64,000 nt of DNA, from the NCBI GenBank assembly GCA_976226885.1, contig OZ320323.1, forward strand, positions 39,060,001 to 39,124,000, written 5' to 3'. Positions 26,201 through 49,531 of this stretch are shown piece after piece. The notes under the pieces are model-generated. The model saw only the letters and a list, made by a program, of their open reading frames with translations, was not told where the DNA came from and did not search any database. The position numbers and the translations under genes were made by a program. Source of the DNA: Iphione sp. A-MEVVRFRX5 (lineage: Eukaryota). Position 1 is the stretch's first letter. Every line of letters starts with the position of its first letter.

Positions 26201-29200
26201 GCATCCTAACAGACCCAGTTTCAGTATGTTGACACTTACACACAGTACTGCATTTTGGTTGTTTTGTTCACAAATGGGATTAGTGTTGCATGCAGCTTGC
26301 AGTGTGAGTGTCCAGTGGAACATTTACTACTGTCGTTGGGTGCGTTTGGCAGGGCATCCCTCCTGTGAGATTCTCACTGACCCAAAGTGTTAATAGCTGG
26401 AGCATGCCTGGCATCATGCAATGCAGAGCCCCTCAGCCTGTCCATCTTCTTCAGGTGAATGGGGAGCAGGTTCCACTCCCTAAGACCCAGGTACCTTAGG
26501 GACTTGGTGTACCTGGTGCTCTTAGGCCTAGGCACAGTTCCACGGATCTCTTTACCCTGTCATGTTTTGGTCAACTTTTTTAGGGATATCAGCCCTAATC
26601 AGATCTGTTTGTGGATTGCACATAGGCCTTTTTGGGTGACGAGGTCCACTACCCATGTCACCCCCAACTTTCGATGTAGCTTTGCTGCAGACAGGTGGTT
26701 GTTGCCCTGTAGGCAGACTCAGGCACACCTATTAAGGTGTACCTGCAGGTCTACTGTTACTCTGCTTGGGAGGCCATACCATAGCACTGCATGGTATTGG
26801 TAGTGGGTGACAACTAGACTCTTGAAGAGCATTAGTCATGCATTCAATGGTAAGAAGCTTTTAGTTCTTCCTACCTTCAGCCACCCAGGTCTTCATTTTG
26901 ACCTCCTTGCAACACTCACGCATGTTCAGCCTCCCATCTAGCCTGTACCCTAGAAGTTTAGGGCTCTTGTCCAGGCATAGTGGCTGCCCACTTAGGGATA
27001 GATCCATGGGTATACCATGTGCTTTGGCTAGAGGGCAGTAGGTGCATTTAGGCGCACTCAAGACCAGCCCCTCTTGATGACACCACACAGAGACAGCATT
27101 TAGAGCCATTAGCGCAGTACCGCAGAGTCTTAGCAGATCATGGGCAAACACCACCACCGAAAGGTCATCAGCATAGATGACTGCCTTACAGTCCACCGGG
27201 AGTGACCCCACTATGCTGTTGATGGCCAAGTTGAATGCCACAGGGCCAAATATTGAGCCCTGTGGCACCCCTTGCTTAAGGACCCTTACTTGTGAGTCCT
27301 TCCCTGCACAATGTACGAACGGGCACCTATCATTCAGGTATGACCTAACCATCTTCCTTACTTTTGGACCAGCACCCATCTCACTTAGCCGATTCACAAC
27401 TGTTTGATGGGGTACCAGGTCAAAGGCCTTCTTTAGGTCAAAGGCAAGCAAGCAAGTGTAAAGTCCCTCATTTGTTAGGTCCTGGACATGGTTTACCAAG
27501 TTGACAATTGCTGTTTCAGTCCCTCTTCCAGCCCGGAAACCATGTTGGGTGGACGTTATTGAGCCGTTTGACTCTAGCCTCTCGACAATTTCTCTAGTGA
27601 ACCATCTTTCACAGAGCTTCAATTGCACTGGGAGAATAGAGACAGGATGGTAGTATGAGAGTCGGTCGACGTCTCCCTTTTTGTACACTGTAGTTACCCG
27701 TACACACTACCAACTCCTTGGTAACTGGCCAGTCCTGTAGATTTCTGCAAATAGCTAGGCTATGAAGTCGGGACAGAGTAGCAGTAGTGGCTTCAGAATC
27801 TTGGTACCTTTAATTCCAGAAGATTTCTGGACATTGATTGTTTCAACCAGCTTGTGGGCCTGTAAGGGAGTAGGAGGAACAATGTCAAATCCATCCAATA
27901 GTAAGTACCCATCAGTGTTCTCATCATGCTTGGCAGGCCCCGCCAGTCTTTCAACTTCTTCAATGAAGTAGTTATTGAATGATGTTGACAATGATTCTCC
28001 ATGTGCTCACTCCCAATCAGTACTGTCCGGTATTCTGGTAGTGAGATTAGGAGAGCATGGAGGGAATTTATCATGGGCAAGGCCTTATTGTATATAAAAT
28101 CTTTATTTATACTGGCAAGAATCATACATTCAGTATTTGCAGCCAGATTTTCAATACATCAAACTGAGATTACATACATTCATTCAATCTATACCGGAAC
28201 AACTAATTAAGGTAATAAAAAGAAAAATGAAAAGAAATGTAAAAGTAATTAGTTACTTAATCAATTAACTAATTAAATTAACCAGTTTTAGCTATGCTTC
28301 AGCATATATACTACAAAGTGTATTCAAAGCTCCTATCCATTAATATTATATCTTAGTCTAAGGGATGTGTAATTTTATATATAAGACCAATATTAATTAG
28401 ACCACGTCCATCCCAAGTAATGGAATAAGCACTTCATTCATTTTGTTTCAGTTTTTGGTATTAGACAACGTCCTTCCTGACCATTTTCCATGAGACAACG
28501 TCCATCATAACAATATCTCTCATTATTAATGCAAACTGTTGTTAAGTTTTCTATTATTCAACAATTCCACATATTATTGACAACATCCTTTCCTGGGTTA
28601 AGTTTTAGACCAATTAGAAGCCACTAGTTTAACACTTCATGATACCATATAATTCGACTTGATCCTTTTGTGGAGTTGTGTAGAATGGCCGAGTAGAGAA
28701 GACGTGTCTTGGTGCTCTCCCGGATTTCTCGCTCATATGTCAGCATGGGAAGGAAATGAATCAAACCAATTTCATCATCGGGGAATGGTAGTTCCATGCA
28801 ACTGAGATCGACGTCTCTAAATGACCTACGCCGCTCAACTCTAGAAGAAATGCATAAGAGGATGTCGGCAGATTTGAACATGAGCGACAATAGGGAGAAG
28901 GTCGACAATCAGCAGATGGATGCAGATATGAATCCTGGTAAGGAACCTGACAATGGTGACCACGCCAAGTCGATGGGTGTCAATGCGAGTGAACCCCGAA
29001 GTGACAGTCAAGACTGTGACTGCCATGAGCGGCTATCCAAACTCGAGGACACTGTGACTAATCTGAGACAATTTATCAACGTTGAGTTGAATAGGCTAAA
29101 AGAGGAACTAAACAGTGTTCGAGACGGCGGCGACTCAACTCAATCGGGAGATCGGGCGGATATTGATAAGCTGGTGGACAAGCTTCAGAGGGACATGGAG

Positions 29201-32200
29201 CAATCCCAACGGAAATTATCTGAGTTGGATCGTAAGTGCAAAATGGTTGATCTGGACTTAATTAGACTCGAGATTAACGACAGATGTAGACGACTAGTGA
29301 TCGAGGGTGCACCTACGAAGGACCACAACGCAATGAGACATTACGTAAACAAGTTAGTTTGGGAAGTGGCCAAGATCAAAGGCACGGAGGTTGAAGACAT
29401 CAAGGTTTTCAATGCTGCCAAGGAAACCTGCAGGGTGGGCGTGCTCCTTACTTCTATAGAAGCGAGGAATTTGATTCTCAAAGGCAAGTCTACATTGGCT
29501 AAACGTGAGCAGTACAAACATGTATTTATTAAGGAAGATCTACCAACTAGTGCACTGAGTCTTAACAGTCGGCAACAGAGGCTAGCGGCTAAGGCGCGCG
29601 AAAACGGTAAGCGCGCGATTGTCAAGGGACTTGACCTAATTGTGGAAGGTGAAAAATTCACTCCGCTGGACGAGGAATTTCTTCCTGACTATCTCATGCA
29701 TGAAAATGCCCATGTGTGCACAACGGATGATGAGGTGCGTTTTGATATTGATCATAAATTTTTCTCTATGATGTCGTCAAATCCGACTATTGTTCACGGT
29801 AAACAATTTGGTTCTCCAGAATTAGCGTTTCAATTTTCGAAATCGCGCATGCTCAACGACACGAAAGCTCAACGGGAGATCTGCCGAGCTAAATCGAGTG
29901 AAGACGGTCGTAAAATTGGAAGTTTGATCAAGGACTCAGAAGAATGGGCATCAAATTCCGAGGTAATACTTGAGGAAACCATGTGGGGAATGATTTCAGC
30001 TAATCAGGAGGCCCAATCAATGTTGTTGCAGACTGGTAACAGAGAAATCATCTACGATAACCGAGATACGACACTCGGTAGCGGTTGTGCCCAGCTGAAT
30101 GTAAACAAAACTGTAATTGATCATTCACAAAGTGGGGAGAACAGGCTGGGTAAGGTATTAATGAAGATTCGGGAGAATTTACGTCTAAGATGACTGTAGA
30201 ACTCCAGCAATTACACCAATCGAACTCATTTTTCGACATATTTATTCTGGTGTACTTTATTCGCTGTTCTTTTCATACACAGCGACAGTGTTGAGACATC
30301 CAAGGTCGGGGTCCGTGTCACATCAGACTCGTATATTGATATTTGTCGACACAAGAACAAAGATGTCAGTTGATAGGCTGAAGGATGTGGTGCATACTCT
30401 ACCACCAACAGTCATTCACATCATATACATGAGGAGATGCTCGTACAGGCGGATCGTGCGCTGGCTACAGTATACGGAAACTCGCCGCTACCACCTTGTC
30501 ATGACGGCGATTGGTATGTACGACTGGGTCCGTCGCGAAACGGGGCAATGGGCAGTCACTACAGGCAGCCCAAGCGAATATTCTGCCCGGCAGGATTGGT
30601 GTTTCAAAAGGATCCGGCAGCTCGTAGAGGAGAGAGATGGGGCATCGACAAAGTTGATTCACGCCTGTGCTTCGAGTATCGACATTCACGCAATGGAGCT
30701 GGACATTTTGGACCATGAGGAGGAACAAGCGAAGATTGATGCTGCAGTGGTCATTCACAACTTCTCTTGTGAGTGGTCAAGTGCCAGGCACGGCATGGAC
30801 ACCTGCATGCTGGATTGGCCGATTTCCAGGCTGACTGCTGGGAACATCGTCAATGATTTTACTAGAGTGAATTCGGATGGATTCACTCCGACTGACGCAA
30901 CTCAGCCTGAATGGACTCATATGGTGCTACGGTTTCTTAGGGAGTTCATCAGAGAATATGGACATCAACATATCTGTTAACTCAAACATGCTGCGCTCTT
31001 GCTGTCGTTTTTTGCTATGTGTAGAGTCTGCTGAATTATCAGCCTATGCGTTATAGGGTATGCAAGTACCAAACAATTGTCCTAACTTCGGCCAACAATG
31101 TACATTACCGTGATTGGAGCTCAAGATATGTGCATTTCACGACTCTTTGGATATATTTGCCGTATTATCTGTATTAGTATCACTAGTGTAATCAGGGTCA
31201 GAGAGTGTTTGTATTGTGCATATCACGACTTTTTGGCTATATTTGCCGTATTATCGGTATTTGCATCCTTAGTGTATACGGGGTCTGAGAGTGTTTATAT
31301 CCCTGGAGACGCATTTACATGTGCTTGTCTCATACAGTGACTGGGAGTGTTTGTATCGTGCATTTCATGACTTTTTGCTACATTTGCCGTATTACCTGTA
31401 TTTGCATCATTGGTGTAAACTGGGTCTGAGAGTGTTATATCCCAGGAGACGCATTTACTAGTGCTTGTTTCATACAGAGACTGAGGGGCTTGTTCTTGCA
31501 CAAATCAATTTATGCGCCTTCCACACAAAATCCTTATTTATCACTGTGTTGTAATCATACAACTGTTTCCTCATATATAGTTGTCCACGCTTCAACGTTA
31601 CTAGTAGTAAGTCAACCGTATGCCGACGTTACTAGTAGTAAGTGAACCATATGCTGGATCGTTTATCCGGGAGAGCACAAGGGTATTGAATCGTACATTG
31701 AATCTTATATTGAATCATTTATTCCATCCTTTTTCATCCTTTCGCGCGCTACCAATTCTGACCATGAAGGGTATTAGGTTGTTAACTTGGAATGTTAGAA
31801 GCCTATCCAACAAAATTTCTGAAGTGTCTGATTTGCTTCATGCAGAATCTATCTCTATAGCATGTATTACCGAGTCGTGGCTAACTGACAATCACAATGA
31901 TGCAGAGGTCGACATCCCAGGTTTCAACATAATTCGGGCCGACAGGGTTCTGGGTAGAAAGAAGAGGGGGGGTGGGCTATTGATCTATGTCAAGGACAAT
32001 TTTTCTGTCCTATCAATAACGAAGCTGTCATTTGAAACTAGTGCCTGTGAATTCCTTGGAGTTGTCGTAAAGATGGGCAACCACCGGCCGCTGGAATTGC
32101 TCGTTCTGTACAGGCCCCCGGAGGATAAAATAAATTCTTCTCTTGCGGCAATCAACGCAGCATGTAGCAGCTTCTTCAGTAGGAAGAGACGGGATAGGAT

Positions 32201-35200
32201 TATAACGGGTGATTTTAACTTTGACTATCATGGGTGTGGCAGGGCGGGCACCGCTATCACTAACCTCCTATCTGGTAGGGGATTTACACAGTTAATATCA
32301 CGTTCGAGTATGCTAGACTCGAACCGTCTGCTCGATCAAATTTGGTGTGATTTTTCTGGATGCTGGGAGCTAGACCTTCTCATGGGATTTGTGAGTGACC
32401 ACTTGCCAGTAGGGATAAGAATTAAAAAAGGGACATCAGCTAAAGTAGTAGAAAAGAAAACAATCCGCAAATGGGATGGGGTCAATGTAAACGAGGTCCA
32501 TAAGAAATTGCAGGATGCGGGCTTGTTGGAGACCTCGGGGAACCATGAAAAGGTATGGGATGATCTGATAACGTTCACTCAGAAGGAGTTGGAAGAATGT
32601 TGTCGGCGGAAAGAGGTGACTAGGAGGAGGGACAGGGATGGTTTTTCCCCATCTTTGGCCCTGAAGGAAATATGCAAAGACAGAGCCCATTTCTTCAGGA
32701 AATGGAAGACCGACTCATGTACAGACAGTAGGAATATATTCAAGTTTCTCAGTAAGAAAATTAATTCCATAGTCAGACGGGAGAAGAAGGAATATTGGTG
32801 TAACAAACTAAGGGAGGTAAAGGGTTCTCAAGCAGGAAGCTGGGGTGTAGTGAACAAGCTGCTCGGCCGCAGTCAAAAGAGGGAGACACTGCCTGATGAG
32901 ATTACGGGTGTATCTAACAACACTCCTGACCCAGTCACTCGCAATCCCAAAAATCTGGCAACCAGCTTTAATGATTTCTTCTATGACAAAGTTCGGACAC
33001 TATGTCAGAGTGCTCCGAATTGTAGGGAGAATGATTTCTTGCCATCCAGTGGCAGGTATGACCTCACTCCTCCCACCCCATCTGAGGTTGCGTCAATAAT
33101 AGCAAAGGTGAAAATCATAAAACCTTTGGGTATTGATGGTGTTCCAACCAGAGTCTTAAAGCCGTTGATGCTAATGATACCAGAGGTACTTTCTTGGATT
33201 TTCTCTGAGATTCTCCGCACTGGGAGTTATCCACGTAGCTGGAAAGTGGCTCGGGTGACGCCAGTGATTAAGAAAGGTGACAAAACTGATCTGGGAAATT
33301 ATAGGCCAGTCTCCATCCTGCCTCTTCCGAAACATGGTTCACTTCGCAAATAATGCAAATAGTCGAGCGGGATAAACTTCTGTCTGATGCGCAGCATGGG
33401 TTTCGAAGAGGCAGGAGCACGGAGACGGCATATGTGAAGCTAATCAATGACATCATGTCTAGCCTCAATCAAGGAGTGTATAGTTGTCTTGTCACATTCG
33501 ACCTAACGAAGGCGTTCGACCTTGTGCCCCACTATAGTGTACTGGCCGCTCTCCATTCTCTTGGTTTTGGCAGAAAAACCGTCAACCTTGTAAAGGGTTA
33601 CCTGGAAGGAAGATCACAGTTTGTCAGATGCAAGGGGGTGGATTCAAATCAACTGGCACTCAAGCAAGGCGTTCCGCAAGGATCCGTCTTTGGTCCGAGT
33701 GCTTTTCTGCTTGTCATTGATTCATTGGCTAAGCAGCTACCACCTGGAGCGCACCCGGTCCTATATGCCGATGACCTGAGTATTCTAATGACTGCGAGGG
33801 ACCTACTCATGCTAAGGGGTACTACTATGAGAGCGATAGCAGCAGTACACTCATGGTGCAAGGCTAACGGCTTTGTCTTAAGCGAAAAGAAATGCTGCTA
33901 CAACATGCTGGGTCGTGCTGCTGGTATACCGCTAGACCTATCACTGAACGGTGAAAGCCTTGACATGCATGACCCAATCAAATTTCTAGGGTACCGTATC
34001 CAGGGAAATCTCCGGGCTAAATCAACTATTGCTAGAGTGGTCTGTAAGATGTGGGGTGCCTCTAAGAAAATCTCTAGGGTGAAGAGATATCTGCCTAGCC
34101 ATGTACGCAGTCAGTTATTCAACTGTCTGGTAGTATCGCATCTGAAATACCATCTTGCAGCACTGTATGGCATCAGTAAGGCAGAGAGGGTAAATCTTCA
34201 AATTCAGGTGAATCGTTGTGCGCGAGCTAGTATCCAATGTGGCTCCTTTCTCTCTGCGAGAAAGTTACAAGACAACTTTGGTGTTCCAAGGGTTGATGAC
34301 CTAATTCAAGAATGGGGATTAAACGCTATTAACCGCGAGATAAACCTGAAACTGCTACCTGCAGACTCTCTCACTAAGACTCGAAGGGGTAAATTACCAC
34401 GAGCAACACTGTCCAAACCTCGAAGTAACCTCTATCTGAAGTCTTTGCGCTATCATGGCGTCAACGCTTGGAACTCATTACCCCCTGACCAAAGAGCTTC
34501 GAAACGTATCATACTGAGGCATTAAGCGAGAGTGTGTTATCGTTGTGGTCGTCTGCAAGTGTTTAACCATGTAATGCTATTCCATCCATGATCTGTATTC
34601 TCATGTTTCTCCTGTCAGTTGCCTACGAAACTATCTGATACTATAATGTGATACATAACCCACAGAGGGGTACTTCTGGTTCTTTCATGACTATAGTTTT
34701 GTGCTTGTTACATTGTATTGATATTTGTCCATAATTGCCCCCACTGCTTATCTGTATACAGTCGAACCAAGATCAGTATTTATCTCTTTCAACCACTTTA
34801 TTCAGATTAATTACATCAATTGCTTGAAATCTGTGATACTTAATTAGGAGACATCTAACGTAACCATCCCAGCACAGTGGATTAACAATGTATGTACTTG
34901 AAGTTTCAACATACCTGTCATTTATCATTAGGTTGTGCCTCAGCTCAACAGAACTCCCTGTGTATGCCAATAACCCATGTGTATGCTGATGTTCACCCAT
35001 GACAGTCTTATAGACATCCAGTCGTTTAATTGTGATACACTCAAGTCAACACTTCCAAACATGCTACTACCTGTATATATCTGCGTCTTGTACCCCTGCA
35101 TAATGCTGTAAAATGTGATACTTCTTTTCTCGAATTTATCGTTTACATGTTTATTCCTGTTATTAATTATCATGCCTTTTGTTCTATAGGGATAAGTCTC

Positions 35201-38200
35201 TGAAATCTCTGTAACTCATTTATAGAGAAGACAAATAAAATCTTGAATCTTGAATCTTGAATCTTATCTCTACGTAGTCTCTTCCACAGACTCTGCATTT
35301 TCTTATAATCATAATAGGTTTCATCAGCACTGAGATTATACCAGATTTTCTGAAATTTATAGATAGCTGATATTTTTGTTGATTCCTTTTTAGGTCGTAT
35401 TTGCGGTATGGGTCTCTTTTTCTGAAGCCTGGTTTGTGTCGAGCCAGAGTATTCTTCAGTCTCATTTAAGCCATAGTAACAATATCCCAATCGCAAAATT
35501 ACTGAATTCCGAATAGCTGCCATTTCTTCCTTGGTGCTCTAGACGGAGGTTCCCTTGGACTATAACCAATTCTATAGACAAGCCTTCTTAGACTAACCAT
35601 CTTCTTATACCACGGACTTTTCTCATTTAGTAACAAGAAAGAGCCATAATCCAGAATTGGTAGAATCATTGATCTAATAATTATTTGGGCATAGTACTGA
35701 TTGATTAGAGTCCTTATGCATTTAAATTGCTTTACCTTATGATAACCTTTCTTCAATAAGTCCCTGATCTGGCTATCCCAGTTTAGGTTAGTAGTAATTG
35801 TGACTCCCAGGTACTTAAATGATGTAACCTGCTCTATTGCTACATCATTCAAGCACACTTGAAAGTTTACCTTTTTCTTACCATAACTGAATGGCATAGC
35901 CTTTGTCTTCTTTAAATTTATTAATATTCTGTTCTTAATAGACCACTGATTTAACAATTCTAAGTCAAGTTGCAAACTGTTTATGGCTTCTTGCCAGGTG
36001 TCACCCACTGATACAATGGCAACATCATCAGCATATAGAAAACAACGTGACCTTTGAAATTCATCAGGCAGATCATTAATAAAGATCAGAAACAACAATG
36101 GACCTAGCAGAGAACCTTGTGGAACACCACAGCTAATCCTGTTTAATTCACTAAACTTAGTATCTACTTTAGTTTTTTGCCACCGATGATCCAAATAGGC
36201 TGTCATTAATGGTATAATTTCTTCTGCCCCAATATTGTGTAACTTTTTTAATATTATTGAGTGGCTCACTGAATCAAACGCCTTAGAGAAGTCAATAAAA
36301 CAGCTCATAGCCTTCTTATTGTCATTAAAGATACTAGTTATATAGGTTGTCATTGAAAATATTGCTGACTCAGTACCCCTGCCACTCCTAAAACCAAATT
36401 GATCATGCGACAGCGTTATTGGTCTTATCTTGGTGAATAACTTGGTTTTGCATTTCCCCAACTTTTATTGATGATCTTGGTGTTGTGAACGGCTTAACTA
36501 TCATTATTGATAAATTGAAGGACTATTATGTTAATGTGGTGAAGGATAGCCTTTGTGAAGTAGGAGGGGACAGATTAATCGTTGGTAACATATAGTCACT
36601 GTACATTTAAGAATGGGTATGCCACCATTTACTGTAAAAGAATGGTGTAATACCCTAGCTGATCTCCGAAATAACAAAACGTCCAATTTTCTAGGGGTGC
36701 CCATGAGATTATTTAAGAAATTGTTTTCTATGAACTTTTACTATTACATAACCGAAGTTTATGTAACAGTAAACTGCTGCAGCAAATGGCTGGGTGCTGA
36801 TATCGTGCTGGTATACAAAGGTAAATGGAAGCAGGAATTTAAAAATTTTAGACCAATCAGTCATCTGTCTCCTGATGTTATAGTTATTGAACACATGGTT
36901 GATAATGGAATACATTTATATTTAGAGGGTGTTAACAAATTAAGTGATTTACAGTATGATTTGCCTATGGTTATAGGGACAGCAATCTGCTTGAAGGGTT
37001 CATCAGTTATTTAATCAAAGGCAACACGTGTCCCTGTGTTTTATCAATTTTCCCAAGGCCTTTAACTTGGTAAATCATGATATTTTTTTGTAAAATCAAT
37101 TTCGACCTTGGAAACATATCAGTAACATGTTTCTGCCTATTTAAGCAGTCATACACAAAAGGTGAGGATAATTAAAGTGGAACCTCTCTACTACAGACAA
37201 AAAGGATTGACCAAATACTGTCCGTAAAGAGGAGTGTCATTTATAGCATGAGTATTTAAACATGAATAGATTTGGTTCTGTTTCCAACATATACATAATG
37301 TGAGGTGTCCTTTATAGAGGGTGTCCTTAGTAGAGGGGTTGGTGTTTCCCAAGGATGACTCCTCAGGCTAACTGTTTTTGATTTTTATTAATGACCGACA
37401 CTTATGCATCATTGGTCCTGATTGCCTTCTATACATGGATGATGCGGTTTGTATTAACATTAACTTTTCCTGTAATTGATTAGGGCAATTAAATGCTCAC
37501 AATTAAACTACAGGAAAGTCTTAATTTCTGACCACATCAATTTCCGACCAAACTTGCCATTCCGACCATTTGTCTCTGGAACGGAAATATTCTCAATACA
37601 TTTCCTATATGTTTGACTATCGATTTCTGACCATATTGATTTCCGACCATTTTTGCCATCTGACCACTCATCTTAGGGTCATTTTCTGTATATTTTACTA
37701 TTGATTTCCGACCTCACACCCTGGAGGGGGTGCCGGGAGAGGTCGGCAGTGTCAACTGCGACCTCTCTGATGTGAGCCTCACACCCTGGAGGAGCTGGTC
37801 GGGAGAGGCCGGGGGTGACAATGGCGACCTCTCTGATGTCTCTCACACCATGGAGGGACTATCTCACACCTCTTTAGTTATCAAATTCAGCACTTTTTGG
37901 ACTTTTAGTCATCAAATTCAGCACTTTTTGGACTTAAAGTCATCAAATTCAGCACTTTTTGGATGTTTCAGAGATTATACACATGCAAGTAGAGAGAGAG
38001 GGAGAAAGGGATATTGCTTCCAACCCAGACCCAGATGTTGGATTACTCAGTATGCTTTTTCACAAGATAGTGCTCCTGGTATTAGTATGATTTATGGGGG
38101 GGTCACAGAAGAAGGAATTAAGGGCGACACCTAGAAAGGTTATAATTATTCCAGACACACTAAGGAGGAAGAAATTCATGTTGTCAACCTATTACTGCTC

Positions 38201-44285: not shown

Positions 44286-44490
44286 TGGCGCGAACGTGAG
44301 CGGACGTGTTTTCACGGACCGGGGGAGTGATTAACTGCATTTATATGAGTGATAAAACTCTTTCTACAATATCCCAGTTCATATCTGAACAGGGCAGGAG
44401 CAACGAGCATTACTTCAAGTAATTCATACTCCATAAGCTAGCAATATACAACACGTTATTAAAAAATCTTGTCTCGTCTACGCGGAGACA

Positions 44491-45088
44491 ATGGCTAACG
44501 CTACAAGTGGTAGCATTGTTTTGGATACCTCAACAGACTCGGCCACTGGCTACGTGGACGCGGTACTACCTACACCAACTGCTGTAATCAAGCAACCGAC
44601 ACCTGAGAGGGTTACAACTGATTTATTTCCACAAGTGTTCAGCACTCCAAGTGAACAGCTACTGAGGACCGATTTAAAACAGAAAGAGGGAACCGTTACT
44701 GCCGACAAATCAACACCAGGGGCTGTGAGTTCGCTACCGCCAACTGAAAATACAAAAGAACAACTATGCAGTATTCCAAATGACGGGGGCATAAAAAGAA
44801 AGGAGGTAAGCCCAATCGATTCTAGTCTTGACCATAAAAAAAATCAAAGATGACATAACACAGGTGGAGAAGCAGTATCAAGTGTTAGTACACATCATTA
44901 CTCGCTCGATTACACTCCCGATAGGGGAGACACGATTAGTAGAGGCGTCAACTGACAGCAAATGGGGAGCTGGTGCGAGTCTCTGCTCGCAGGCGATTGG
45001 TTCTGACGCAGTCACAGGGACAAACTGGGCAGGGGAAATCTTAGCGTCAGTTCGGTCGGGTCTCAGAGCAGAGACCGCCTTAAAATGA
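44491..45088 (+). pseudogene. LINE B ORF1 (frameshift at A8 44836-44843, apparently internally deleted) ending in the C-terminal half of a NADAR domain
   Basis: Low-complexity N-terminus with KRKEVSP...HKK(I)K, then after the frameshift IGETRLVEASTDSKWGAG...TGTNWAGEILASVRSGLR. Confidence 0.72.
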
Positions 45089-45123
45089 GAAAGACGTGGG
45101 GATAGCAGTTCGAGATTGACAGA

Positions 45124-45807
45124 ATGAACAACCATCGATGCCCACCATCGGTGTATTTTTTCACCGACTCCCAAGGAAAGACTCTCGAGGAGGACCTACG
45201 GCGACGGGGAATAAGCGTTACAGTGAATGCGTACCCAGGCCTAGGTGCAGCGGAGGTAACTCGTAAGGTAATGGAATACGAGTTTCATGATATTCCACTG
45301 TACATTATACTGATTGTTGGGACTTGCGATGTTACCAAATTGAATAAGAAAGCTCTGTTACCGGATGGGCGAGTAGTATGACAGATCTACCTAGCTGACG
45401 ACAGTTGTGACAAAATGATTCTTAGACTGTCTGTACTTTTTGAAACATGTTATAATAGACTTGCCAAACAATTCCCATCGACATTTATCATTTTCTCTGA
45501 ATTTTTTTGTCCTGACTTGGTCAAATATAACAAATACTTGTGCGGAGAATCTGTTGCAGAGAAGTACACCAGCCGGGTACAAACAGAGCTGAACTCGGCG
45601 ATGCATGAGCTAAACAACGGGGTGAGGGCCCTTAATAGGGCGCATGGCCTAATGACTCCGCATATAGGCAGCATCATCCATGGGCACGCCAACCGCAGAG
45701 ATACCAACAAGCATCAAAAGCTAGAAGACGGATGTCATCTTGACTCGCTGGGAAAGCTGGAGATGCTGGAAAAAATAGTCAAGTTCCTAGGCAAGTTATA
45801 TTGTTGA
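45124..45807 (+). pseudogene. LINE B SGNH/GDSL esterase ORF (227 codons, one in-frame TGA at 45379)
   Basis: Block I FFTDSQG, block II AYPG, block III VGTCD, block V EDGCHL. Track ORFs 45124-45381 and 45415-45807 are in the same frame, separated by a single TGA. Confidence 0.82.
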
Positions 45808-46433
45808 GCCATGACGAATTGACTGTACATATGTCATCAACGTGAAATTTTGTTGAAATTGTTAGATTTCCCTGACTCATGCTATCGCTGCTTGAGCCAT
45901 GATGAATTGACTATATATGTGACACTAATAACGTGAAATCTGATTGAAATCATTAGATTTCCTAGACTCACGCAATCACCGCTTGGTCCGCCTATGTATC
46001 TATATCGCACACACGTTATATTGCCATGTATCCATACCAAGTATGAAGTGTAAGCAATGTACTTTAATTGAGAAAACAAGCTCAACTACTATTATGTCCT
46101 CCCGCTATAAGACAGGTCTCGATTAAGAGACCACAATGACTCTTTTCATTCATTCATTGATATTGCAAACCCACATATTTTGTATCTGAAGTTGTATTAT
46201 TTTGACTCTCTAAACGCAATGAGAATAAAAATCTTTATGTAACAATGTTTAACTGACCTACTGGTCTCGTCATTGAGACCTAGGTATACGAAAGTAGATT
46301 AATTCATAATCATCCCATTACATCGACCTCCCCCGGTCCGGCTTAATTTCACATCCAGAAAAGAGTGTATAGGCCTTATATAGACATTTCAAAATAATAA
46401 CAAAAACTTCTCGCTTTGGCTAATCAAACTTTA

Positions 46434-49262
46434 ATGAAAAAAAGTACCCCTATTTCACAGGATTGTATAAAATTATTGCACATCAATGTAAGAAGTCTTT
46501 CGAACAAAGTATTGGACATCGGGCATCTAATCACACAGAATTCACCAGACATTATCGCTGTCTCAGAAACTTGGCTAACTGCATTAGTTCCGAACTCTGT
46601 GATTAAGATCGATAACTACAGCATAATACGACAAGACAGAGCATATAAGGCTGGAGGAGGACTAGTGCTATACATCAGGGATGGAGTTGACTACGATGAG
46701 ACAAACTACGGATATCTGAATACTAGCACCAACAACCTTGAAGCATTATGGGTGGGTATTCATCTGAGAAATCGTGAAAAAATGTTTATTGGGGCAGTGT
46801 ATAGACCACCGAAAGGCAACATAAGAAATATGACTGCTACATTAGATATATGTTTAGAAAAAATCTATACAAAAACTGGTAAGATAGTATTAATGGGTGA
46901 CTTTAATATTAATGCGATATCCCCAAACGCTCACTATTTCGAACTATGCCATTTATGTAAGAATTTTGATCTCCATCAAATTATAACTACGCAAACTCGC
47001 TCAACTATACTTACAGATACATGTATTGACTTGTCATTTGTTAGTAAACTTGAAACTAGCAGCGGCAGAGTAATCAAATCATTCATAAGTGACCATCATT
47101 GCATAGAGGTAACAATATTTTGGAAATCTGAAAAACCATGTCTCCCACCCTTTAATTATCGAATCTGGAAAACACCACAGAAGGAGTTATTTAAACTGGC
47201 TATAGATAATTTTGACTGGTCTCGTTACTATCAGAACAGAGACCCGAATTATCTATGGAGCTATCTGGAGTCATTTATTATAGAAACTCTTGACAAAGTA
47301 ACACCACAAAAACGATCACAAACAAAGTGTATAGAAAAGATATGGATTGAAAAGAAAACCATCTCTATGATCACTGAAAAGAATAGACTATATAAAACAG
47401 CACTAAGGCTTAAAAGCCGCAGTCTTTATGAATGAGCTAACAAACTACGCCTGGAAATAAATAAGCAGTTGTGGGAAGATAAATCGAAATTCATCAATAA
47501 GCAATTGAATGAGAATAAGACTAATCCAAAATCATACTGGAAAATTATTAACTCTCTACTCGGAAAGAAAAAAGCTACCCAATCCATATCTCTGTCTCAT
47601 AACAACATAATGATAGCTACTAACAGAATCGCAGATGTGCTTAATGAACATTTTGCAACCATAGGTAGCTCTAGTTATAACATAGACAGTAAACTAATCA
47701 CAGAAAACGTCCCGTATCTGATTGACAACATGAGCCTGATGTCGGTGGATGCTATTCGAGTACTTGAAATGTTAAGAAATTTGGACAAAAACAAACCAAG
47801 TGGCATAGCAAATTGTTCTACTAAGATCTTAATAGATGTTCTGATTATGCTAGTAGACCAATTTGTACATTTAATTAATAGTATTTTAGACTGCAAGATA
47901 TTCCCTTACAAATGGAAAGTAGCTACAATTACTCCATTATATAAGGGAAAAGGGCCGAAAAATGATGCAAACTCATATAGGCCCATCAGTATTCTGCCAT
48001 TACCAAGTAAAATCATTGAAAAGATAGTCTTCCAACAAACAACAGATTTCATTGAAAAACATGGCTTATTGTCTAAAACACAATTTGGCTTTCGGAAGGG
48101 AAGAAGTACTACTAATGCAATAGATTGCATTCTAGGCTATATCATGGAGAATATTGAGCAAGGAAATATAGTAGGTGCAATATTTGTGGATTATAAAAAG
48201 GCTTTTGACTCTCTTCAGCACTGCATTCTTCTGAAAAAAAATGGAAAAAATGGGTTTCGGTAATATCTTGAAATGGTTTGAAGATTACTTGACAAATAGG
48301 AAAATTGTGACTAAGGCAAACTGCAAGCTTTCAGAACCCATGGAACTCAGACTCGGTGTCCCGCAAGGGAGTATTCTAGGTCCAATGTTATTTACCTTAT
48401 TTATTAATGATAGTGTTAAATGCTTCAATAAAAGCCTGTGTGTTATGTACGCTGATGATACATTGATCCTTTTTGCTGACAAAACACCAGAGGCCGTTAA
48501 CCGGGTTCTAAGTCAGGAGTTTCATAATCTGAATCATTGGTGTCAATCTAATGGGATCAGAATGAACTACACTAAGACTGAAATGATGATATTTTGCAGT
48601 AAACGCAGTAAACATAAAAATTCAGAATTAAAAATCAACATAGATGGAAATTTCCTGGCCACTGCCTCTGAGTATAATTATCTGGGATTTGTGTTGGATA
48701 AATACTTGGACATTAATCTGGAACTCCAGAAGAAAATCAAAAAATCATATCGTCTGTTGAACCTACTAAGACATGTGAGAAAACAGAGCTCTTCCAATGC
48801 CACCGAATGTGTCCTTAAATCATACTTATCCCGAACCTAGAATATGGCATTGGGTCTATACAATGTCACAATAGTAGGCTATTTCATAAACTTGAACGTC
48901 AACTGGAAAAGGCTATAAGAATTACTTGGGGTGACTTCAGAACAAATTACAATGAACTTTTGATAAAACACAAATTAAATACATTTGCTAGTAGAAGTCA
49001 GTATTATGTAGTCTTGTCACACTTCGAAGTATTGTCAAATGAGCACATGGTAAGAACCAAAACATGCAACCTGCGTCGACCCAGACTGAGAAACCCTAGA
49101 CCCAAAAGAGACCTAATCATGAGACATCCGCGGTACTGTGCTAGAGCAAATTGGAACAAAATAGATTCTGACATAGTTCATATGCCCAAAAACAAATTTA
49201 AGAAGTATTTCAGACAGGAACTTCTAGAGCGACTGAGAAAAGAAAATCTGACAGTCCATTAG
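46434..49262 (+). pseudogene. LINE B ORF2 (APE + RT) with one TGA (47433) and two frameshifts (A8 at 48234-48241; about 48830)
   Basis: LLHINVRSL, AVSETWL, VYRPP, MGDFN, SDHH; SYRPISILP, QFGFRKGRST, DYKKAFD, GVPQGSILGP, YADD. The C-terminal frame continues to TAG at 49262. Confidence 0.92.
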
Positions 49263-49531
49263 ATTTAAAAATCAAGGGCAGATAGGGAATACTGACCATT
49301 TTTTTGTCCCCCGACTATGATTTCCTGATCTACGTTCATACATCGATCCATCATTCAGATCATCGCCATCAGTTTCACAAACCTTGTACATATGTGTATA
49401 CTGTATATACTGTATATATTGTAAATAAGCCGTTGTACATAGCATTAAGAACAGTACCTACAAAACTATAAAATTCTGGCACCAATAAGGACTGCCAGGT
49501 GAAATAATGGAATAAAAAAAAAGAAAAAATT

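Follow-up and report, generated by a model that had tools for sequence, protein, structure and literature searches.

A three-ORF LINE copy from Iphione sp. with a NADAR domain in ORF1 and a separate, probably SGNH/GDSL-fold protein

The window studied here, 64,000 nucleotides of contig OZ320323.1 from Iphione sp. A-MEVVRFRX5, contains a LINE copy with three ORFs rather than two (Table 1). The layout put forward in the original prediction, which was made from the letters of the DNA, is confirmed. ORF1 begins with a variable N-terminus, followed by a predicted coiled coil, an RRM, a CTD and a C-terminal NADAR domain. It is succeeded by a small middle ORF (ORFX), a spacer, an APE-RT ORF2 and a long 3′ UTR. 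The copy is dead because a 13-nt gap breaks ORF2. With somewhat more confidence than doubt, we read it as a defective tricistronic LINE copy in which NADAR and ORFX are non-catalytic and are kept as binding or scaffolding modules. The copy would belong to an old, low-copy subfamily within a large group of invertebrate LINEs, whose unit would be tricistronic, encoding an ORF1p (coiled coil, RRM, CTD) with a fused NADAR, a free-standing ORFX of ~229 aa, most likely of the SGNH/GDSL esterase fold, and the APE-RT ORF2.

Table 1. Positions of the LINE copy, its parts and a second LINE in the window
Feature	Position	Strand	Evidence
LINE copy	28685-35265	+	three ORFs; homology to diverged copies bounds both ends
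5′ UTR	28685..28795	+	alignment and sequence
ORF1, 465 aa	28796..30193	+	ORF list, Pfam, alignment, AF2 and Foldseek
Predicted coiled coil of ORF1p, ~aa 77-160	29024..29275	+	heptad-like sequence
L1-type RRM and CTD of ORF1p, ~aa 161-300	29276..29695	+	AF2, Foldseek, VIA
NADAR (YbiA-like), aa 321-463	29756..30184	+	Pfam PF08719, PDB 8BAU
ORFX, stand-alone, 230 codons	30288..30980	+	ORF list, alignments, ESM-atlas, fold searches, dN/dS
ORFX-ORF2 spacer, 783 nt	30981..31763	+	TRF
ORF2 part 1: start, APE, linker, N-terminal RT edge	31764..33353 (frame open from 31620)	+	Pfam PF03372
ORF2 part 2, other frame: RT and C-terminal domain	33353..34525	+	Pfam PF00078
3′ UTR, variable part	34526..35195	+	subfamilies unalignable here
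Conserved 3′ module: stem-loop and microsatellite	35196..35265	+	identity among copies, alignment, fold, TRF
LINE B, second, very divergent LINE	44286-49531

In alignments, homology with the family members L034 and L032 starts exactly at 28685, and 3′ homology ends at 35265. The order ORF1-NADAR, ORFX, spacer, ORF2 is also found in L034, L032, L033 and L007/L031. Copies that diverged independently and lie on different chromosomes, at least five of them, have it in the same orientation, with 50–70% protein identity. In L034, which is intact, ORF1 has 512 aa and contains NADAR (E 1.5e-13), ORFX has 229 aa and an ATG, and ORF2 has at least 912 aa. L036 and L003 are 5′-truncated, as is typical of LINEs. 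An ORF1-NADAR and ORFX block might have come to lie by chance, or by nested insertion, upstream of a separate 5′-truncated APE-RT LINE. The unconserved, repeat-containing spacer, an insertion of ~4.8 kb in the spacer of the relative L035 and the failure to find a target-site duplication when one was looked for are all compatible with such an origin. It is nevertheless extremely improbable, since the same gene order is present in diverged copies, one of them intact. Co-variation with these copies extends to the 5′ UTR and the 3′ module, and the very distant LINE B has the same order. Chance juxtaposition is thus effectively refuted, and the claim that the three separate ORFs belong to a genuine LINE lineage holds. 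Segmental duplication of one locus is disfavored because the flanks of the diverged copies differ.

A short upstream ATG at 28746 is followed by a stop after 4 codons; at this site ORF1 of L034 is extended N-terminally by 17 codons. The coiled coil of ORF1p is inferred from sequence, this segment giving only weak matches to coiled-coil Pfam families. In an AF2 model, the helix running into the RRM aligns in Foldseek with the point where the trimer coil of L1 ORF1p ends. The modeled topology is β-α-β-β-α-β, then a helix and three strands; pLDDT is 65–80 in the RRM. The top 10 Foldseek matches for the RRM and CTD model are all human L1 ORF1p (2ykp/2yko/2ykq/2ldy; E 2e-5 to 2e-3), and VIA gave a Z of 9.3 for the RRM. 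These two domains are the best conserved portion of ORF1. Besides L1 itself, some subgroups of CR1 and L2 have ORF1 proteins of the L1 type (type II, Transposase_22-like; PMC4120745). The Iphione protein shares their coiled coil, RRM and CTD, and the trimer structures of human L1 ORF1p match its model. Unlike them, it has no match to Pfam PF02994 and carries ~165 aa of NADAR added at the C-terminus.

The NADAR assignment was borne out by Pfam PF08719 (E 4.5e-20, 73 bits; cut-off 35.1) and further supported by PDB 8BAU (E 1.2e-4). With residue roles taken from PMC11543638, the equivalents of E43 and K50 of 8BAU are retained as E342 and K349. Where YbiA-type NADARs have their catalytic Glu on the last strand, the alignments show Tyr or Phe in the window copy and L034. 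The window copy has Tyr at this position and an Asp directly after it, which could stand in for the Glu. Both copies also carry Ser at the position equivalent to R79 and LG in place of WG in the WG motif. The NADAR of the window lineage therefore appears, from its sequence, to lack a key catalytic residue.

All NADARs tested so far hydrolyze guanine-ADP-ribose (PMC11543638, PMC11125620). The domain had been proposed as an ADP-ribose eraser. An alternative to our reading is that it actively counters an ADP-ribosylating restriction by the host, with guanine of the element RNA, cDNA or target DNA, or proteins, as targets, and that ORFX is a working lipid-directed esterase. The record of the tested NADARs, the mutationally important E43 and K50 equivalents, which are invariant in all copies compared, and the Asp adjoining the replaced Glu speak for activity. 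LINE B, which consists in order of the C-terminal half of a NADAR, esterase pieces (TDSQG and DGCH motifs) and APE-RT, retains the canonical LVEAS Glu of NADAR and the Ser/His motifs of the esterase. Against Pfam, the best NADAR copies of the genome reach 93–109 bits, above the window lineage. Against activity are the substitutions in the window copy and L034, the NADAR bit scores of 73 and 52 in this lineage, well below those of other copies in the genome, and the changes in ORFX described below. A weak search with two Pfam models, which carries little information, found no pierisin-type or exotoxin-type ART in the host. The eraser proposal is weakened for this lineage, even though the E43 and K50 equivalents are kept, and we consider active enzymes unlikely. 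An eraser role may hold in the wider group, because the motifs are kept in LINE B and the top genomic NADARs score higher.

ORFX lacks an ATG in the window copy, which has GTG-TTG codons at the site where L034 and L032 carry ATG. It is the most constrained of the three genes, with dN/dS of 0.05–0.06 (0.060 for L034-L032 at dS 0.73; 0.048 for window-L035), indicating strong purifying selection; the values for ORF1 and ORF2 are ~0.17. The prediction of a separate 230-codon SGNH-like ORF was correct as to the ORF, while the SGNH identity is only probable. HMMER, Pfam, PDB and hhalign searches gave no link to SGNH. The AF2 model is unreliable (pLDDT 43), and its fold matches are not significant (E ~0.1) and, at Z ≤7.5, are tied with other α/β/α folds. 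The longest full-length matches to this poor model are SGNH esterases, with nearly whole targets covered. An ESM-atlas feature search with two 70%-identical queries returned almost exclusively GDSL clusters, at 0.93–0.94, and the recognition values exceeded the 2300 mark, although about one third of shuffled proteins likewise get one uniform family among their top matches. Leftover motifs fall in the correct order on predicted strands and helices: xxD of block I, GxxD of block III and DGxxP of block V. ORFX is probably an SGNH/GDSL-fold protein that is catalytically dead. In the motif alignment, the SGNH Ser, Asn and His positions are all replaced. The block I residue is variable (T/E/V/D; Thr for Ser in the window copy) and the block V His is T or M. 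If this alignment is right, ORFX is not a working esterase, and a catalytic role becomes doubtful for the middle ORF as it does for NADAR.

ORFX could instead be an unrelated, lineage-specific α/β protein, for example flavodoxin-like or periplasmic-binding-like, with the GDSL signal an artefact of a β-α-β order common to both folds. Such an origin would fit the absence of profile matches to GDSL families or PDB, the absence of an hhalign link to the esterase pieces of LINE B, the equal Z of lumazine synthase and sugar-binding proteins among the top VIA matches, and the behavior of shuffled proteins in the atlas. It does not readily account for the near-uniform GDSL result of both atlas queries, the longest alignments being with SGNH esterases, or the ordered motif remnants. 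In addition, Pfam-positive GDSL ORFs of the genome's other NADAR LINEs occupy exactly the position of ORFX and match it in size. We regard an unrelated fold as improbable and favor the SGNH/GDSL fold. The genome has at least 4,416 candidate NADAR sites; 150 scored candidates gave 93–176 bits, mostly within open frames of 500–700 aa. ORFX-like candidate sites number at least 2,401, mostly stand-alone open frames of 240–290 aa. In four places a Pfam Lipase_GDSL_2 match lies immediately downstream of a NADAR match on the same strand, two of them above the cut-off.

The predicted repeat-containing spacer was recovered, with tandem repeats at 31129-31483 (TRF; periods 86 and 141). Its sequence is not conserved among subfamilies and its length varies from ~380 to 800 nt. 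ORF2 has a conserved start, MKGIRLL. The expected APE-RT identity is evident from matches to PF03372 (APE endonuclease, ~31782-32261, E 4e-7) and PF00078 (RT, ~33371-34000, E 5.4e-27), and the C-terminal domain ends ...WNSLP.... The frame is split in two in the window copy because of the 13-nt gap, which lies between 33328 and 33329 in the alignment with L036; in L036 and L034, ORF2 is a single intact ORF of 912–933 aa. The long 3′ UTR with hairpin and microsatellite tail is also present, 740 nt in all (34526-35265). The stem-loop, in which the variable base lies in the loop, has an outer stem at 35196-35232 and an inner 9-bp stem at 35206-35228 and is followed by (AATCTTG)x3.9 at 35239-35265 (TRF). 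The module, ~68 nt, is near-invariant among subfamilies, and the flanks diverge beyond it. In many copies its identity is 93–98%, against 66–70% for their coding regions. It is likely the recognition site of the reverse transcriptase. Copying would proceed by target-primed reverse transcription, with the RT primed on the stem-loop and (AATCTTG)n tail. A ~930-aa APE-RT, the conserved 3′ stem-loop with microsatellite and the lack of poly-A point to the CR1/L2 type, a putative assignment.

The suggested novelty is partial. NADAR-bearing ORF1 proteins were already reported in 'Tx1' LINE families of the oyster Crassostrea gigas (Repbase), with a role in processing of the RNA intermediate suggested (PMC12477816, Genome Biol 2025). 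As in Iphione, a YbiA-family NADAR lies within an invertebrate LINE ORF1 protein. That account gives no architecture, separate esterase ORF, catalytic-site analysis or copy numbers. By description the oyster elements, labeled Tx1 (L1 group), are set apart from the Iphione element with its ~930-aa ORF2, stem-loop and microsatellite. Ectocarpus Gypsy LTR retrotransposons have an N-terminal NADAR in Pol (PMC12477816). There too a retrotransposon has acquired a YbiA-type NADAR, independently. The case differs in that the element is of the LTR type, the domain is on Pol rather than a Gag/ORF1 analogue, and its nearest NADAR relatives are bacterial. Type IV (esterase) ORF1 proteins are known in CR1, L2 and RTEX LINEs, such as zebrafish ZfL2-1 (PMC3905857; Kapitonov and Jurka, 2003). 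ZfL2-1 resembles the Iphione element in having an SGNH-fold module, probable here, upstream of APE-RT, and the 3′ stem-loop and short-repeat tail of a stringent-type LINE. ORF1p of ZfL2-1-type elements contains the esterase as a domain fused behind a coiled coil and has no RNA-binding domains; the catalytic residues of this esterase are strongly conserved and active. In Iphione, by contrast, the esterase-like protein has its own cistron, apparently lacks Ser/Asn/His and coexists with an L1-type RRM-CTD ORF1p. Enzymatic ORF3s (GDSL esterase, DEDDy exonuclease) occur in LTR retrotransposons and Athena Penelope-like elements of bdelloid rotifers, and catalytic residues have likewise been lost in some lineages, as in Athena-L (PMC5408684). 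Unlike the Iphione LINE, these elements are of the LTR and PLE classes, with the ORF downstream of pol and no NADAR.

The three-gene layout is real and common in the Iphione genome, and has barely been described before. In the window lineage, the accessory modules would have lost catalytic residues, the Ser/Asn/His of SGNH and the last-strand Glu of NADAR, yet they are maintained by strong purifying selection. They most likely bind or scaffold within the LINE ribonucleoprotein particle. We infer these binding roles, as we do the mode of translation of ORFX and ORF2. The ligand of NADAR would be a nucleotide, ADP-ribose or a modified nucleic acid, and that of the esterase fold a lipid or membrane, in line with the proposal that the type IV esterase of ZfL2-1 has a role in associating the RNP with lipids or membranes (PMC3905857).

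The element in the window, at 28685-35265 on the forward strand, carries three genes. An ORF scan agreed exactly with the arrangement originally predicted on this strand, namely ORF1, a separate second ORF (ORFX) and an APE-RT ORF2, and the spacer repeats, hairpin and microsatellite tail claimed with it were likewise confirmed. The second cistron begins 95 nt, and the third 783 nt, downstream of the preceding stop codon. At the 5' side, alignment with two diverged relatives places the start of homology, and thus the limit of the element, at 28685. When eight 3' ends from diverged copies were aligned, the last ~68 nt, consisting of the stem-loop and heptamer repeats, were almost invariant. The rest of the 3' UTR, which precedes this 3' module, could not be aligned between copies, and the flanks diverged directly after the tail repeats. 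The 5' start of homology and the divergence of the 3' flanks show that 28685-35265 is the whole insertion. In a search for a target-site duplication the flanks shared only chance-level 7-8-mers.

Coordinates of the element's features, of the second LINE in the window (LINE B), and of related sites elsewhere in the genome
Feature	Position	Strand	Details or basis
ORF1	28796-30193	+	465 aa; ORF scan
ORFX	30288-30980	+	separate ORF, 230 codons; ORF scan
Spacer tandem repeats, period 86/141	31129-31483		TRF
ORF2, two consecutive frames, jointly APE-RT	31620-33353 and 33353-34525	+	ORF scan
9-bp hairpin	35206-35228
(AATCTTG)x3.9	35239-35265		TRF
LINE B NADAR, C-terminal half	44828-45088	+	Pfam 7e-6
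LINE B esterase piece with TDSQG	45124-45381	+
LINE B esterase piece with DGCH	45415-45807	+
LINE B APE start	46416	+
LINE B RT start	47469	+
NADAR/GDSL pair	C4:30365851/30366351
NADAR/GDSL pair	C17:26333411/26333911
NADAR/GDSL pair	C15:6654336/6655026
NADAR/GDSL pair	C26:29677723/29677115
Isolated 3'-module match	G000:C22:16202560-16202628
Isolated 3'-module match	C4:10727274-10727338
Isolated 3'-module match	C11:79411697-79411761
Isolated 3'-module match	C10:46394527-46394592

PF03372 and PF00078 are both matched in the window, with a frameshift between them, and in the intact ORF2s of two relatives, L034 and L036. In the window Exo_endo_phos lies in the first ORF2 piece and the RVT_1 match (PF00078) in the second, at E 5.4e-27 in Pfam. 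The RT is related to the structures of L1 ORF2p and R2, which are its only PDB relatives. Copies on other chromosomes begin at query positions 2406 and 3261 yet extend to the 3' tail, as is typical of LINEs. The element is an APE-type non-LTR retrotransposon (LINE) with the standard TPRT machinery.

LINEs of the stringent L2/CR1 type typically end in a stem-loop and short tandem repeats instead of poly-A. The element ends in the same way, and its stem-loop with microsatellite is of the kind recognized by stringent-type LINE reverse transcriptases. Across the family no other nucleotide feature is as well conserved as the 3' module, and the sole variable base of the stem-loop sits in the loop. 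The 3' region as a whole folds no better than shuffles (z -0.9); the hairpin is supported by its conservation and not by its folding energy. The 3' module also has many isolated matches, 65-70 nt long and 94-98% identical, with no LINE body detected adjoining them, such as those in the table; they may have arisen by extreme 5' truncation or be SINEs that borrow the tail.

The window copy is defective. Compared with L036, which is 90% identical and has ORF2 as one open frame of 933 aa, the window has a gap of 13 nt between 33328 and 33329, which puts ORF2 out of frame. A 17-codon N-terminal extension of ORF1, present in L034, is closed in the window by a stop codon. ORFX has no AUG in the window, where GTG-TTG (30288-30293) stands in place of the ATG of L034 and another copy, L032; the diverged copy L007 has GTG-CTG here (about 2195-2200, - strand). 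The missing AUG is thus common to the window/L007 sub-branch, and the sequences suggest that ORFX may be translated there by non-AUG initiation or reinitiation. A DNA search of the assembly reported three other copies at least 80% identical to the window, each 5'-truncated or interrupted, and dS between the window and L036 is 0.17. Taken together, the few close copies, this divergence and the defects indicate that the window subfamily is old and low-copy.

More distant relatives were found by a DNA search of the 1.18 Gb assembly, with tblastn on the fetched loci. The order ORF1-NADAR, ORFX, spacer, ORF2 recurs on other chromosomes, in copies whose proteins are 50-70% identical. The original prediction would have failed if other copies lacked the upstream ORFs, but these diverged copies do carry both, and a chance juxtaposition of ORF1-NADAR and ORFX with APE-RT is rejected on the strength of the shared order. 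L034 is intact, with an ORF1 of 512 aa (NADAR E 1.5e-13), an ORFX of 229 aa that starts with ATG, and an ORF2 of at least 912 aa that begins MKGVKLL. A fusion of ORF1 and ORFX by frameshifting is rejected, since the ORFX frame in this copy is closed for 86 nt past the ORF1 stop. The spacer varies from ~380 to 800 nt among copies, and its repeats are confined to the window's subfamily. In L035 (G000:C19:3576000-3585999), 82-90% identical, ~4.8 kb separate ORFX from ORF2 (about 4420-9356), probably because the spacer took up an insertion at a later time.

The same module order is seen in LINE B, a second and very divergent LINE in the window (44286-49531, + strand), the ORF2 of which is about 23% identical to that of the element. 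Its esterase is spread over two frames by a frameshift and its ORF1 is mostly missing or decayed. The element itself lies in a LINE-rich patch, flanked by opposite-strand LINE fragments at 26434-27997 (-) and 35499-36461 (-), the second of which abuts its 3' end; identity to the element's ORF2 is 41-48% for one fragment and about 27% for the other.

An AF2 model of ORF1p (aa 150-465, 3-row alignment) was confident in the RRM only, at pLDDT 65-80; the CTD was of moderate confidence, at 53-67, and the NADAR part was poor. The ten best Foldseek matches were all human L1 ORF1p (2ykp, 2yko, 2ykq, 2ldy), with prob 1.00 and E from 2e-5 to 2e-3 over about 155 columns, and VIA recognized the RRM at Z 9.3. 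By these matches the modelled ORF1p is an L1-type (type II) RNA-binding protein to which a NADAR domain has been appended. Its N-terminus has coiled-coil sequence character and weak matches to coiled-coil Pfam families; Transposase_22 (PF02994) gave no Pfam match in ORF1 at E up to 1. In ESM-atlas features, the nearest clusters to aa 75-300 are from arthropods and carry Pfam Baculo_FP_2nd, baculovirus FP25K-like (0.93, 200/256 features), with Transposase_22 clusters farther away at 0.82-0.88.

The NADAR-like C-terminus claimed for ORF1 was borne out by Pfam: PF08719 matches aa 321-463 over HMM positions 11-163, with E 4.5e-20 and 73 bits, above the gathering score of 35.1. The L034 domain scores 51.7 bits, and the match to PDB 8BAU has E 1.2e-4. 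Residues were compared with 8BAU, the P. nicotianae NADAR, using a chain offset of +2 that fits seven named residues and the residue roles assigned earlier, in which E43 and K50 are E88 and K95 of E. coli C7 (PMC11543638). E125, the catalytic Glu of the last strand, defines the YbiA family (PMC11125620). The active-site residues E43 and K50 correspond to E342 and K349 of the window and are invariant in three ORF1 copies. In the window lineage K75 is replaced by Arg and R79 by Ser, and E125 has become Tyr in the window and Phe in L034, with an Asp at +1 of the replaced Glu; in LINE B alignment places the canonical LVEAS Glu at this position. The last-strand catalytic position is Asp in the BC4488 family and His in phage NADARs. 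The lineage also scores lower in Pfam, at 73 and 52 bits compared with 93-109 bits for the LINE-borne genomic copies among those scored. Together with the replacement of E125, this points to a catalytic centre that is altered or lost in the window lineage, though the Asp at +1 leaves some doubt.

There are at least 4,416 candidate PF08719 sites in the genome, and all 150 of those scored reach 93-176 bits, mostly within open frames of 500-700 aa. ORFX-like candidates number at least 2,401; the 150 scored all have E below 1e-49, and nearly all are stand-alone frames of 240-290 aa. Lipase_GDSL_2 (PF13472) matched at 68 places, 15 of them above the cut-off, and here too the frames, 220-280 aa long, are intron-less. 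Four NADAR matches have a GDSL match 70-270 nt downstream on the same strand (two above the cut-off; frames of 234-271 aa), compared with ~0.02 such coincidences expected by chance from the list sizes. The counts and the four pairs indicate that LINEs with NADAR plus esterase are a major repeat class of this genome. By far the strongest NADAR match, on C22 (G000:C22:27636416-27636865, -), covers the full HMM at 176 bits and E 5e-49 in a 329-aa open frame, well clear of the 93-109 bits of the LINE-borne copies; this locus may hold a NADAR gene of the host itself or the source of a recent capture.

The esterase assignment of ORFX is less direct. Profiles upheld the NADAR half of the original prediction but not the SGNH half, as Pfam gave no match for any of seven ORFX sequences at E up to 10, and an ORFX profile matched nothing in the PDB. 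A phmmer search of 1.84 billion representative proteins returned one spurious 28-aa match only, and hhalign found no relation between the ORFX profile and the two LINE B esterase pieces. A search for homologous proteins with ORFX, ORF1 or NADAR alone found none, but the method demands shared exact words and similar length and says little. The evidence in favour is indirect and points one way. ESM-atlas features of two 70%-identical versions of ORFX retrieve almost only GDSL/SGNH clusters (0.93-0.94). An AF2 model from a 7-row alignment was poor (pLDDT 43). Searched with this model, Foldseek ranks SGNH esterases first among its full-length rows (E about 0.1), and in VIA they align over the greatest length, 126-133 residues at Z 6.3-7.4, although other alpha/beta/alpha folds score equally. 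In size, position and predicted beta-alpha order ORFX matches the GDSL ORFs that Pfam recognizes in sister elements, and its place is that of the PF13472-positive ORFs after NADAR at the four paired sites and of the TDSQG and DGCH pieces in LINE B. An SGNH/GDSL fold is therefore probable.

In a block alignment of five copies, inferred by motif and not from structure, the catalytic Ser of block I is replaced by T/E/V/D, the oxyanion Asn of block III by Y/F and the His of block V by T/M. If this alignment is right, ORFX would be a pseudo-esterase. Even so, no gene of the element is more tightly constrained than ORFX, with dN/dS of 0.060 between L034 and L032 (dS 0.73) and 0.048 between the window and L035; ORF1 and ORF2 are at about 0.17.

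Esterase modules are present inside the ORF1p of CR1, L2 and RTEX elements, where they are catalytically conserved and without RNA-binding domains (PMC3905857, PMC4120745, PMC13343379), and stand-alone GDSL ORFs are known from LTR and Penelope-like elements of rotifers (PMC5408684). One paper notes divergent NADAR matches for the ORF1 of 'Tx1' LINEs that Repbase lists from oyster, as well as a NADAR in the Gypsy Pol of Ectocarpus (PMC12477816). This is the one mention of NADAR in LINEs found in the literature. In the papers searched, no description was found of the tricistronic layout, in which an L1-type ORF1p-NADAR is joined by a separate esterase-fold ORF, or of catalytic-residue loss under strong selection. 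The ORF1-NADAR/ORFX/ORF2 architecture is confirmed as real and little described. To our knowledge, the esterase is the sole enzyme fold so far described in LINE ORF1 proteins.

As to function, LINE ORF1 proteins are generally seen as RNA chaperones. The interpretation first offered stands for the architecture, which recurs in the same order in other copies; that the modules act as 'eraser plus esterase' is improbable in the window lineage, given the replaced catalytic residues, and may hold for the wider LINE group. In the window lineage the NADAR and esterase-fold modules would then serve the RNP for binding or as scaffolds, and not as enzymes, and in sister lineages with intact motifs both may be active. 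A search for host ADP-ribosyltransferases of the pierisin and exotoxin types (PF01375, PF03496) gave no match, and its controls were equally silent, which makes the negative uninformative. We hold it to be rather improbable that, in the wider group, NADAR on the RNA-packaging protein erases guanine-N2-ADP-ribose from the element's own RNA, cDNA or integration site, with the window lineage a derived branch in which NADAR and esterase have turned into non-catalytic binding subunits. If NADAR does erase base ADP-ribosylation, this would imply that animals have a nucleic-acid ADP-ribosylation defence against retrotransposons, and that the LINEs have a counter-defence analogous to that of phage NADARs against DarT1.

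In one very abundant LINE group, an RNA-binding ORF1p of the L1 type and a NADAR domain occur together with an esterase-fold gene that is separate. The group thereby provides a natural series, from copies with canonical catalytic motifs, of the LINE B type, to those that have lost them, as in the window lineage. With NADAR copies in the thousands, there is also a consequence for annotation: what has been reported as 'NADAR genes' from mollusc-like genomes may for the most part be LINE ORF1s. The copy series could serve to test both base ADP-ribosylation in the conflict between animal hosts and retrotransposons and the role of the enigmatic LINE esterase.
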